A DNA stretch of 64,000 bases, taken from Oculina patagonica. Its lineage: Eukaryota. The stretch is taken from the NCBI RefSeq assembly GCF_052425735.1, contig NC_135759.1, positions 38,812,001 through 38,876,000 of the forward strand, read 5' to 3'. Numbering within the stretch: position 1 is the first letter of the stretch; each line of letters begins with the position of its first letter. Position numbers and translations under genes: made by a program. Positions 53,401 to 56,400 of this stretch are shown one piece after another. The notes below the pieces were generated by a model, which worked only from the letters and a program-made list of their open reading frames with translations, was not told the DNA's origin and made no database searches.

Positions 53401-56400
53401 GCGGGGGTACTCCGGCTTGTAAATGACAGGGATGATCGAAGGATTTTTTGGGGGTTGAAATTTTCGATTCCGGGATTTTTTTGGGTTGGATAATTTGGTG
53501 ATTGTGAAGAACAGCTCCCGCTAACCGACTGTCGGCCGACAGGTTACCAACACACTACCGACAGGGCACCGACAGCCCACCGACAGGTTACCGACAGCTT
53601 CCCAAAACAGACATTTTACTGTAAAACTGAGCAGTAAACACAGAAGTAAGCCCGACGCAGAAAGCGATTAAAACAGATAGGACTTACAAACATTGTATTT
53701 CATTGTACTACGGTACTTACTACAAAACAAATCGACTCCTCGCCAAGATTTTCTTTTATACAAACTTCAATCTTTTATAAATCTATCACCTACGTAGCTT
53801 TAAGTGCATAAGGCAAGCAATGAAATCACGTTCGAAGATGATTTTATCCAAAACTCAGGCCAAAACAGTGCAAAAACCTCTCCACACACGCACTCGCTGA
53901 AGTCGCCCTAGAATCCTTTGCGACCCCTTCATGGTACGTGTATGTCATGTAAGAGTAAATAATGTTTACCTTTTAACTTTTTTCTCTGTTTGCATTGCAG
54001 GTTGCAGCGTAAATAGTTTCATTTCTCTTCAGAATTTATATGTAAAAAAGGAAATGTTACACGGACGCCTATTGAATTACGTTTTTCTAATTTCTATACG
54101 CAATACAGTGTAATTTGATAATTGATTTAGCGCATGCTGTGATAATTGATTTAGACGCGTGCCACCCTTATTCCCGTTAACAACAAACATATCACACACG
54201 TTGGTCAAGACTTTCATTTATTTGGTGGCTCCTAAAGGAGCCGTTTTTTTTTCATCAAACTAAGTGAACTTAGTTTGGAGGGTAGAACTCAGCAATGCCA
54301 GCTAACACGTTGTCGAAAGGATCGCCTGAGAAACATTTTCGCCAGTTGAACTCATCCAGGTATCCAGGAATTCTCTCTCTCTGAGTGCCGTTCATCGCCT
54401 TCAGTTTCCTTTTAATCTGACTCCATACTCCTTCAATCGTGTTCGAGTGGGCTCCAGTGTAAGGGTCAACAAAGTTCTCAGAATGGTTAACCATGAGGTG
54501 GACGTAGCCGATACTGTTCAGGTTGAAGTATGGTGAAAACTTGTCAGAAATTATCAGCGTTCCAGGCTCGACGAATTGCTGTACCAGTCCAGTTACCAGA
54601 GTTTCTCTTGTTCTGTTGGGTACTCGGAACGCAAGAGCTCTGCCAGTGCCTCTTTCAACCATGCCGAAGACCCAGGTGCCTCTACCGATTCGCCCGCGGT
54701 TGTACTTGCGTTTGTGGCCAAACATGGATTCGTCGATCTCTACAGTCTTTCCACGGCCGCCCAGTTTAATGTTTCCTTGTAGAATTTTCTCGGTGCAGAT
54801 GTCTCTGAGACTTTCAAGTACCTTGACCACCGTACGGAGTGACAATCCGGTTAGCAGGGAAACTTTTTTGTTGGATTCGTCGATCGACCACAGCCAGATG
54901 ATGTACAGCCAGCGATGCAGAGGAATCTTGGAATCTTGGAAAAAAGAACCAGCGCGAATTGATCTTCGTTTTCTGCATTGGTTTACTGGGCATTCCCAGT
55001 GATATCCGTCATCAGAATTATCACATCGTAGAACCATATCGTTTCCACAAGAGCACCTACGCCTAGCCGCCAGTAAGCCACGATCGACAAGGAACGTGAG
55101 CACGGCGTGGCAACTATGGATCAAGGTAAGTATCTCGAAGTGGTTCATGATGAAATGAGTTTATTCACTCTTTCAACAACCTTTATAAAACCTCTGATCG
55201 GATCGAAATTAACCAATGAGAAGTAACTTATTGTAATGGAAAGTATTCATATGCAAAATAGACACAAGTAATCAAACTCGACCAATAACATGCGTTGTTA
55301 ATAAACCAATCAACAAATTGTTATTGTTTATTTGATCCATTTAACAGAGTATAAAAAACCTTGAGTTTAAACGGTCTCTATCATTACGACTCGCAATGTC
55401 TCAGAGAACTCGAAAGTGTACTGTGTGCGGCGGCGCCCACGCCATGTTACAGTGTGAAAATAAGTGTGGTGTTTGTAACGGCGACAACCGTCAGTGTTCG
55501 TGTACGGTGCGCCCAACCCAGAAAAGAAAGAAGACAGCGAAGTCTGCGTCATCCAACCCTCAACGCTCGTATGACGAACTGCAAAAGAAGTACGAGGCCC
55601 TGCTGAAAGACCATGACAGGGTCGGGCTGGCATTCCAGAACCAGAAAGAGCAGAACCAGGAACTGGCACAAGAGCTTCAGGAGAGGGAGAGTGAGGCGGA
55701 GGAGCTAGCGAACATCATAAGAACGAAAGACGAGGTCGTCAAAAACCTCGAGCGGCGCCTCGTCAACGCCAAGAAAGTCATCCACGAACTACGAGCGGAG
55801 GTCGAACAGCTGAAACAGAACGACCAGCCAGAGAGAGAAGAGCCGCCCACCGAACAGCAGCAGCAGCACCAGCAAAGAAATGGCAGTCGTGTCAGTACCC
55901 ATAGCTTGGCCAGCATCCACGAGCGCCATGACCAGGTCATGAACGTCATGATGGAAAACCGATGCAGTATGGCGTGCGCCTTTCGACTGGCCAGCTGCCC
56001 CAGGAGCACTGTCAGAGACTTTGTTGCAATCGCCGAACTTAAGAAGGTCGACGCCAGAGAGTTAGACCTTGTCCTGCGTGACCAGCAAGTGGCTTCCGTG
56101 AAACAACTTGAGACACTGTGCAGAAGACGGCTTCGCAGGTTCATTCCAGTGATGGAAAACATGCGAAGAGAGGGGAAACTACTGCCGCTGAAATTTGATC
56201 AGCGCTTCTACGAGTGAAGTTTGACTCCACTTCGTCAAAAACGGCTCCTTTAGGAGCCACCAAGTCTATAAAAGTAAATGACCAACAATAAAGTTAATTT
56301 ATGATAACAAACATTAATACACTACGTGAAACATAAGAAAAGATACTTGCGATACGTCACATGAAACGAAAATTGTATAAAAATCCGAGGGGGAATGAGA

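Follow-up and report, generated by a model that had tools for sequence, protein, structure and literature searches.

Among animal mRNAs, the textbook example of a 3' end formed by a stem-loop rather than by a poly(A) tail is provided by the replication-dependent histone mRNAs. To our knowledge, they are essentially the sole users of this signal, and the SLBP/U7 pathway is seen as reserved for them. A 64,000-nucleotide stretch of the Oculina patagonica genome (NCBI RefSeq assembly GCF_052425735.1, contig NC_135759.1, positions 38,812,001 to 38,876,000 of the forward strand; hereafter the window, in whose coordinates all positions are given) raises the question of what such stem-loops are doing behind both genes of a DNA transposon. 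The original prediction, made from the letters of the window, had proposed histone-like 3' ends at this locus; here, the element, its 3' signals and its relatives are analyzed together with coral histone genes.

Structure of the Merlin element

The two genes, which are intronless and divergently transcribed, belong to a 3,377-bp element (53497-56873) of this scleractinian coral genome, an autonomous DNA transposon of the Merlin (IS1595) type that looks intact. Its ends form a pair of 42-nt TIRs (53497-53538, plus strand, beginning GGTGATTGTGAAG; 56832-56873, minus strand) that are 95% complementary, and the TIR 33-mer is found within the window at these two ends only. The 8-mer GATAATTT abuts both of them, at 53489-53496 on the left and at 56874-56881 on the right, and was read from the sequence as an 8-bp TSD, as is typical of Merlin elements, which have TIRs and a TSD of 8-9 bp. 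Subterminal arrays of 11-bp repeats are present on both sides. On the left (53513-53614), ACCGACAG-type repeats form a direct-repeat family with 11-nt spacing and are probable transposase-binding sites; on the right (56599-56847), CCGACAG-type repeats in two direct-repeat families are accompanied by palindromes, with many inverted pairs. Homologous proteins of the Merlin transposase number 1,022, many of them in coral assemblies, and related Merlin elements are found at differing genomic contexts, as for mobile DNA.

The transposase gene (54270-55148, minus strand) is intronless and encodes a 292-aa protein with a DDE_Tnp_IS1595 domain (Pfam PF12762; E 1.5e-27, 96.9 bits, cut-off 27). It shares 85% identity with a protein from Stylophora pistillata and 77% with one from Oculina patagonica. 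On the plus strand, ORF2 (55396-56217, from the list of open reading frames) encodes 273 aa, with a Cys-rich N-terminus, a coiled coil and a CCDC106-like C-terminus. The window ORF2 gives coiled-coil noise only in Pfam; a homologue in locus L005, 49% identical to it, lies above the Pfam CCDC106 cut-off (33.1 versus 30.2 bits).

Stem-loops behind both genes

An identical 27-mer in sense orientation behind each Merlin ORF was the starting point of the original prediction, and it is confirmed here. The 27-mer AAAAACGGCTCCTTTAGGAGCCACCAA has exactly two copies in the window, at 54222-54248 (minus strand) and 56237-56263 (plus strand), each sense to its upstream ORF, and shuffled sequence gives no match even when three mismatches are allowed. 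The distances first given, 27 and 25 nt after the stop codon of the transposase gene and ORF2, respectively, are correct for the first G of the stem, whereas the whole 27-mer begins earlier, 21 and 19 nt past the stop. The arms 54210-54248 and 56237-56275, each 39 nt, are 90% complementary.

Both copies have the form of the Rfam Histone3 family (RF00032), with a 5' flank AAAAAC, the hairpin GGCUCC UUUA GGAGCC and a 3' flank ACCAA. The stem-loop proper occupies 54227-54242 behind the transposase gene and 56243-56258 behind ORF2, and in each case it is the minimum-energy hairpin (z -3.2 for the ORF2 copy). With the Histone3 covariance model, the ORF2 copy scores 35.7 bits and exceeds the 34-bit gathering score, and the transposase copy scores 33.4 bits (E 4.8e-7), 0.6 bits below it. 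The shortfall on the transposase side is not meaningful, because in L046 and L083 a scan at the gathering threshold also missed stem-loops that follow real histone genes; behind coral histone genes, Histone3 scores are 34.1-39 bits, and some are below the gathering score. The covariance model thus supports the histone-type identity that had been proposed. Judged by their sequence and by the downstream elements described below, the 27-mers are histone-type 3' stem-loops with an HDE behind both Merlin genes.

Downstream elements and AATAAA motifs

The original prediction had also noted a shared element downstream of the two stem-loops and an AATAAA next to each, and both observations hold. Behind the transposase gene, the HDE GAAAGTCTTGACCAA (54201-54215, minus strand) begins 11 nt past the stem, and behind ORF2, the HDE AAAGTAAATGACCAA (56271-56285, plus strand) begins 12 nt past the stem. 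These were scored with a PWM built solely from 27 coral histone 3' flanks, which themselves score 9.1-23.9 (median 19.6). The transposase-side HDE scores 14.6 and the ORF2-side HDE 18.9, and among 119,920 other anchor positions in the window, none reaches 14.6 at offsets 11-13. The coral histone HDE consensus, AAAAGCAATGACCAA (also given as AAAAGYMATGACCAA), starts 11-13 nt after the stem, and both transposon genes match it at the same position. The transposase-side HDE scores poorly in two related elements, L001 and L002 (0.7 and 1.9), possibly because these copies are decaying.

A canonical poly(A) signal does lie nearby, since AATAAA adjoins the histone-type signal in both genes. As read from the sequence, it stands between the transposase gene's stem-loop and its HDE (54217-54222, minus strand) and directly past the HDE of ORF2 (56287-56292, plus strand), where it is a possible alternative poly(A) signal. 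Among relatives, the transposase-side motif is seen in L001, L003, L004, L005 and L131 and is absent in L002; on the ORF2 side, L005 and L131 have the HDE followed by a similar AATAAA. No U7 snRNA was matched when the window and 20 loci were scanned with Rfam, and a pattern search (Sm site, 3' hairpin and HDE duplex) of 603 kb gave no candidate.

Comparison with coral histone genes

The histone genes used for comparison come from metagenome contigs of related corals, not from the window's own genome. In 120 such coral contigs with the exact stem-loop, 28 sites lie behind Pfam-confirmed H1, H2A, H2B, H3 or H4 ORFs. Coral genes for all five histones carry GGCTCC-TTTA-GGAGCC-ACCA, identical to the transposon stem-loop in its C-G top pair and UUUA loop, at a stop-to-stem distance of 22-36 nt and in flanks that are A/T-rich, often with AATAAA-like strings. 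Set against the stem-loops and HDEs of these related-coral histone genes, the transposon signals are the same in stem-loop, downstream consensus and spacing.

The C-G top pair had been regarded as a deviation from the histone form, which could alter the binding of SLBP or favor a paralogue of it. It is no deviation in these corals, whose H1, H2A, H2B, H3 and H4 stem-loops have the same pair, and both proposed roles are rejected for that reason. Since coral histone genes carry the exact stem-loop, the transposon copies follow the host norm, and a special SLBP is not needed.

Conservation among Merlin relatives

The stem-loop is present in all ten distinct Merlin relatives (from Stylophora, Oculina and others; 52-92% transposase identity), 15-27 nt after the stop codon. 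In the three elements that have both genes complete on the contig (the window element, L005 and L131), it stands behind both genes. The 3' UTR alignment has 26 invariant columns, namely the first base of the stop codon, the stem-loop together with both flanks, and the HDE's AA-GT core. Two changes within the stem were seen, and both preserve pairing: L005 has U-A, and L131 has U.G, in place of C-G. In more distant Merlins at 40-43% identity (L007, L128 and L129), AATAAA lies at the stop and the stem-loop is missing, which places acquisition of the signal within one Merlin lineage. Neither the exact stem-loop nor a Merlin relative was found in viral contigs.

Promoter between the genes

The region between the two genes (55149-55395) is a bidirectional promoter, with TATAAA at 55182-55187 (minus strand) and 55350-55355 (plus strand), each after TTT(C)GATCC, three CCAAT/ATTGG boxes and a central ATTTGCAT. 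Its motifs are kept in an alignment of five relatives, and the TTTCGATCC-N-TATAAA module is also found upstream of coral H2A genes. In 1.28 Mb, TTT(C)GATCC-N-TATAAA occurs 22 times, and where the contig is long enough (20 occurrences) it always lies 33-119 nt before an ORF start; what follows is a Merlin gene, an H2A gene or, in a few cases, another ORF of the same loci. The octamer ATTTGCAT was considered as a further histone signature. It is conserved in Merlin promoters but is missing from the 12 coral histone promoters that were extracted, and it is therefore not counted as one.

Other transposase families

The stem-loop and HDE also occur behind Tc1/mariner-like (DDE_3) and pogo-like (DDE_1) ORFs, with divergence down to 46-52% identity inside each of these families, as well as behind DUF7869 and chromodomain ORFs. 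An inverted-repeat search of the short contigs L077, L065 and L035 gave no convincing TIRs for these other families, and we therefore call them transposase-family ORFs rather than delimited elements. Because other coral transposase families have adopted the same cassette, the use of a histone-type 3' cassette seems to be a strategy that DNA transposons of corals follow in general. The broader joint reading, in which a large share of coral histone-type stem-loops is transposon-owned and transposase supply is S-phase-gated by SLBP/U7, stands in our judgement at an even chance.

Predicted processing and alternative explanations

The explanation that we favor, and consider likely, joins these features with what is expected from histone biology: both Merlin genes would carry a host-type, complete replication-dependent histone 3' processing signal that gives them SLBP/U7-dependent, S-phase-restricted expression. 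The signal would comprise the coral-type stem-loop (AAAC GGCUCC UUUA GGAGCC ACCA) and, 11-12 nt on, the coral HDE. In the nascent transcript, the stem-loop would be bound by SLBP and the HDE paired by the U7 snRNP, and CPSF73 would then be expected to cut 4-5 nt past the stem, near 54222/54223 and 56262/56263. The predicted product is a capped, non-polyadenylated mRNA with SLBP-dependent export and translation that would decay once DNA synthesis stops, and the adjoining AATAAA motifs may offer a fallback poly(A) route. Together with this 3' signal, the TTTCGATCC-TATAAA module and CCAAT boxes, as in coral H2A genes, would confine the transposase and the ORF2 protein to S phase and to proliferating cells. 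A cut-and-paste element could benefit from S phase, where the donor copy may be restored by sister-chromatid repair so that copy number can rise. We infer both the S-phase restriction and the gain for the transposon from histone biology, and transposase production is probably tied to DNA replication. Expression of the histone genes that have a stem-loop and HDE is limited to S-phase cells in the cnidarian Hydractinia (PMC5011920). No contig ends at ACCA, the predicted cleavage site; all fetched contigs with relatives are genomic and contain the promoter as well as both genes.

The AATAAA motifs, which in both genes and most relatives lie 0-30 nt from the signal, allow a different route, in which polyadenylation is the main one: the stem-loop would function without U7 cleavage, lying within an mRNA that is polyadenylated at the adjacent AATAAA, and would bind SLBP for export, translation or stability. 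Such behavior is found in some histone mRNAs, in oocytes or cells that do not divide as well as in certain early-diverging fungi. Histone genes that combine a stem-loop with poly(A) are documented in other lineages (10.64898/2026.10.14.759114; PMC11997800). However, both genes, and the families as a whole, keep the HDE at the spacing specific to histone genes, which is hard to explain without U7 use, and L002 is without AATAAA near its stem-loop. The motif may also be incidental, because coral histone flanks are likewise A/T-rich and often have AATAAA-like strings. We consider this route rather unlikely.

Other explanations would leave the histone pathway out altogether. Transposons do capture host fragments, and the stem-loops could be inert relics, pieces of a histone 3' flank captured once by a Merlin ancestor and functionless ever since. 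A relic would not readily account for a signal that stands at a histone-like distance behind both ORFs and is the sole conserved island in 3' UTRs that have otherwise diverged, at protein identities as low as 52%. In this signal, stem changes keep pairing and HDE spacing is kept; unrelated transposase families also have it. We hold this to be very improbable. The two copies also form a 39-nt inverted repeat within an element rich in further palindromes, as might be expected if the hairpins acted as DNA sites (for transposase binding or recombination) or as generic terminators or a read-through block before the TIRs, with the histone likeness a coincidence. Yet the stem-loop, flanks and HDE consensus match those of host-type (coral) histone genes base for base, and they are in every case oriented in sense with the ORF upstream. 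Transposase families whose ends are unrelated have this signal too, and transposase binding is more likely a matter of the CCGACAG arrays, which are separate from it. An action as DNA sites or generic terminators is scarcely credible to us, and histone-type 3' processing of the Merlin transcripts remains the favored explanation.

Significance and relation to known systems

In full-text literature other than subscription journals and Repbase Reports, we found no published description of transposase genes with histone 3' ends; a Merlin survey (PMC8101967) was not among the matches for the stem-loop. If the broader reading across families is true, the histone mRNA pathway would have its first large class of non-histone users, and the exclusivity of the SLBP/U7 pathway would be broken by a mobile-element family along with several unrelated families. 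Cut-and-paste elements would have a new way to couple transposition with replication, a strategy previously unrecognized. They would also offer a natural experiment on the benefits of the pathway, whether intronless-mRNA export, S-phase gating or maternal storage. For practical purposes, annotation of coral histone genes by their stem-loop will catch many transposon genes, and poly(A)-selected RNA-seq probably under-reports the activity of transposons that bear it.

Replication-coupled transposition is known from IS10/Tn10 and Tn5, through Dam hemimethylation, and from maize Ac/Ds, which transposes from replicated DNA. The outcome proposed here is the same, transposase activity tied to the replication fork or S phase in a manner that favors copy-number gain, but the proposed means is a hijacked host pathway of histone mRNA synthesis and decay rather than the methylation state of DNA. 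A link between histone 3' processing machinery and mobile-element sequences is also known from human HERV1/LTR12, which has HDE-like motifs and in which U7 snRNA represses LTR-driven transcripts (PMC11417402). There, however, the HDE-like motifs come with no stem-loop behind a coding gene, whereas the coral Merlin has the full stem-loop and HDE behind its ORFs, where they presumably aid expression.

With the Merlin / IS1016-IS1595 superfamily (PMC8101967), the window element has in common the DDE_Tnp_IS1595 transposase, TIRs starting with GG and the 8-bp TSD. Its lineage adds a second, divergently transcribed CCDC106-like gene as well as the histone-type promoter and 3' signals, which the Merlins at 40-43% identity are without. 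The metazoan replication-dependent histone 3' signal (RF00032) is alike in its 6-bp stem starting with GG, its loop of 4 nt in which the first and third bases are U, its A-rich 5' flank and ACCA 3' flank, the intronless gene before it and the purine-rich downstream element 11-13 nt after the stem. It typically lies in sense some 20-40 nt past the stop codon, a range that includes the 25-27 nt seen here. In contrast to that signal, the one described here stands behind a transposase gene and a coiled-coil accessory gene, has AATAAA adjoining it, and its processing is predicted.

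Histone-type 3' ends of the Merlin element

Both genes of the Merlin element, a 3,377-bp transposon at 53497-56873 with divergent, intronless ORFs, are followed by a histone-type stem-loop and a downstream element. The minus-strand ORF (54270-55148; 292 aa) encodes a Merlin-type transposase (Pfam DDE_Tnp_IS1595, E 1.5e-27), with its closest homologues in Stylophora pistillata (85%) and Oculina patagonica (77%), and also in Montipora and Pocillopora, which places the host among scleractinian corals. ORF2 lies on the plus strand (55396-56217; 273 aa) and combines a Cys-rich N-terminus with a coiled coil; it scores below the Pfam CCDC106 cut-off, whereas its 49% identical homologue in a related Merlin (fetched locus L005, 3861-4358, minus strand) passes the gathering score (33.1 vs 30.2 bits). 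Terminal inverted repeats of 42 nt (53497-53538 and 56832-56873; 95% complementary) are flanked by an 8-bp duplication, GATAATTT, and arrays of 11-bp CCGACAG repeats lie inward of both ends. A second inverted-repeat pair (53403-53440 and 57138-57175; 38 nt, 95% complementary) surrounds the element and encloses T/G-rich GGGATTTTTTTGGGT-type repeats; a short MITE-like element of ~390 bp was apparently the insertion site of Merlin, and GATAATTT lies within it. Elsewhere in the window, two identical, divergent tRNA-like genes stand 42 nt apart (62997-63070, minus; 63113-63186, plus); each scores 50.5 bits with Rfam tRNA and is called Thr(GGT) by ARAGORN, with mismatches in the anticodon stem.

The window (64 kb) has exactly two copies of the 27-mer AAAAACGGCTCCTTTAGGAGCCACCAA, at 54222-54248 (minus) and 56237-56263 (plus), and shuffled sequence yielded no match with three mismatches tolerated. 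Both copies lie in sense, 3' of an ORF, and the spacings of 27 nt (transposase) and 25 nt (ORF2) after the stop given in the original prediction were confirmed as distances to the stem start. Its assignment of the stem-loops to the histone type was borne out by Rfam Histone3, with 35.7 bits for ORF2 (gathering score 34) and 33.4 bits (E 4.8e-7) for the transposase copy. The slight shortfall of the latter is not meaningful, since several real coral histone stem-loops also go unreported at the gathering threshold. Such stem-loops follow H2B, H4 and H3 genes at 6241-6262 and 8012-8033 in locus L046 and at 1952-1973 in locus L083 (all minus strand), so default Rfam annotation would leave some coral histone stem-loops undetected.

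To provide a comparison, metagenome contigs were scanned for the exact stem-loop, giving at least 120 coral-derived contigs. Among the matches listed and other fetched loci, 141 stem-loop sites were considered, each assigned the ORF that ends no more than 150 nt before it; H2A, H2B, H3, H4 or H1 precedes 28 of them, and Pfam confirmed the cluster representatives of these histone ORFs. Coral histone genes in related contigs carry exactly the stem-loop AAAC GGCUCC UUUA GGAGCC ACCA, 22-36 nt after the stop. The C-G top pair, which had been read as a deviation, is identical in coral H1, H2A, H2B, H3 and H4 genes, and that interpretation was discarded; judging from the histone genes of related corals, this pair is the norm of the lineage.

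Beyond the 27-mer, the only likeness of the two Merlin 3' regions is the element GAAAGTCTTGACCAA (54201-54215, minus) or AAAGTAAATGACCAA (56271-56285, plus). A 15-nt motif of the histone downstream element (HDE) was learned solely from 27 distinct coral histone 3' flanks (consensus AAAAGCAATGACCAA), where it always starts 11-13 nt past the stem and scores 9.1-23.9 (median 19.6) with the position weight matrix. The Merlin elements score 14.6 at 11 nt (transposase) and 18.9 at 12 nt (ORF2), and at offsets of 11-13 nt all 119,920 other anchor positions in the window stay below 14.6. The shared downstream element initially proposed is thus real and, on these scores and offsets, is the coral HDE. 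No U7 snRNA candidate was found in the 603 kb examined (window and fetched coral loci).

Conservation and alternative explanations

Among Merlin relatives from public assemblies, a Histone3-type stem-loop lies 15-27 nt past the transposase stop in 10/10 distinct relatives (52-92% transposase identity), and all three elements with both genes complete (window, L005, L131) have stem-loop and HDE on both. The stem-loop is missing from Merlins at 40-43% identity (L007, L128, L129), where AATAAA stands at the stop; from this distribution, the histone-type signal is a gain within one Merlin lineage that was later kept. It is very improbable that the stem-loop is an inert captured relic: pairing is kept in both stem changes seen among relatives, a compensatory double change in L005 (GGUUCC/GGAACC) and a U.G top pair in L131-L133.

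Structure prediction gives both hairpins as the minimum-energy fold. When eleven 3' UTRs are aligned, 26 columns are invariant: they cover the stem-loop and its flanks, the AA-GT core of the HDE and the opening base of the stop codon. A role of the hairpin at the DNA level or as a generic terminator has hardly any likelihood. AATAAA lies near the stem-loop of each gene (54217-54222, minus; 56287-56292, plus), and use of the stem-loops together with polyadenylation there is an unlikely but conceivable arrangement. By sequence, the Merlin signals are shown to be the histone signals of the host lineage, correctly placed and conserved.

A promoter module shared with coral H2A genes

The 247-bp intergenic region contains several patches conserved among relatives, including three CCAAT/ATTGG boxes and a central ATTTGCAT. 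Also conserved, on either side, is TTT(C)GATCC with TATAAA ~12 nt further on, ~35-40 nt ahead of the ATG. The TTTCGATCC-TATAAA module, preceded by ATTGG, is also found upstream of coral H2A genes (L030, L044; variants in L046, L063). In all sequence examined it occurs 22 times, and in 20/20 cases with enough contig it stands 33-119 nt ahead of an ORF start; the ORF is a Merlin gene, an H2A gene or, in a few cases, another ORF of these loci. In two stem-loop-bearing contigs, the module also precedes an ORF starting MWPPSCWSVYMLPIRTNNDIEGWHNSLN, transposase-like by eye (L084, ~1262-1400, plus), and a Cys-rich ORF (L016, ~1096-1200, plus). The octamer ATTTGCAT (as TTTTGCATATGAATA, promoter centre 55240-55260) is conserved at 70-92% transposase identity in the promoter alignment of relatives (A1). 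As a histone signature it was set aside and is not counted as shared, since it is absent from all 12 extractable coral histone promoters.

The same cassette behind other ORFs

Among the listed contigs and fetched loci, about two-thirds of the sites whose upstream ORF reaches 60 aa are non-histone, a proportion that reflects contig sampling and is not genome-wide. Pfam assigned ORFs of this group to DDE_3 (Tc1/mariner-like) transposases (at least 11 contigs; e.g. L020, 317-1504, minus), DDE_1 (pogo-like) (at least eight; L035, 1582-2466, plus), DUF7869 proteins (at least three; L034, 1882-3849, minus) and chromodomain proteins (at least four; L102, 848-1549, minus), and in each example the stem-loop and HDE of coral histone genes come after the ORF. 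Several further clusters have no Pfam match. Stem-loop and HDE are kept in the DDE_3 and DDE_1 groups though members have diverged to 46-52% identity, and the HDE motif exceeds the 99th percentile of the null in 90% of 92 sites whose ORF is neither histone nor Merlin. Inverted-repeat searches on three of the non-Merlin contigs (L077, L065, L035), all short, showed no convincing terminal inverted repeats. The overall picture speaks for coral mobile elements having adopted the cassette more than once.

Histone-type stem-loops are also seen in L096 (3293-3338, minus; 4636-4681 and 5190-5235, plus) and L059 (3756-3801, minus; 5062-5107, plus). Their upstream ORFs (135 and 100 aa) have no Pfam match and are divergent as in Merlin; they may represent a further two-gene mobile element with the same cassette.

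Proposed mechanism and relation to known systems

Transposase genes with histone 3' ends are not described in the full-text literature covered (most subscription journals and Repbase Reports lie outside it), and a prior mention is possible. In a 2026 survey of eukaryotic histone 3' processing, "transpos", "non-histone" and "mobile" are absent; in a review from 2026 on how histone genes are organised, both matches to "transpos" are unrelated to histone-type 3' ends of transposons.

By analogy with histone biology, the stem-loop would be bound by SLBP and the HDE paired with the U7 snRNP, with CPSF73 cutting 4-5 nt past the stem. Merlin mRNA would then lack poly(A), be exported and translated via SLBP and decay as S phase ends. 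Transposase limited to S phase could favour repair of the donor site off the sister chromatid and hence copy-number gain, and expression would be confined to proliferating cells, among them, in corals, the precursors of gametes. In another cnidarian, Hydractinia, expression of genes with stem-loop and HDE is restricted to cells in S phase (PMC5011920).
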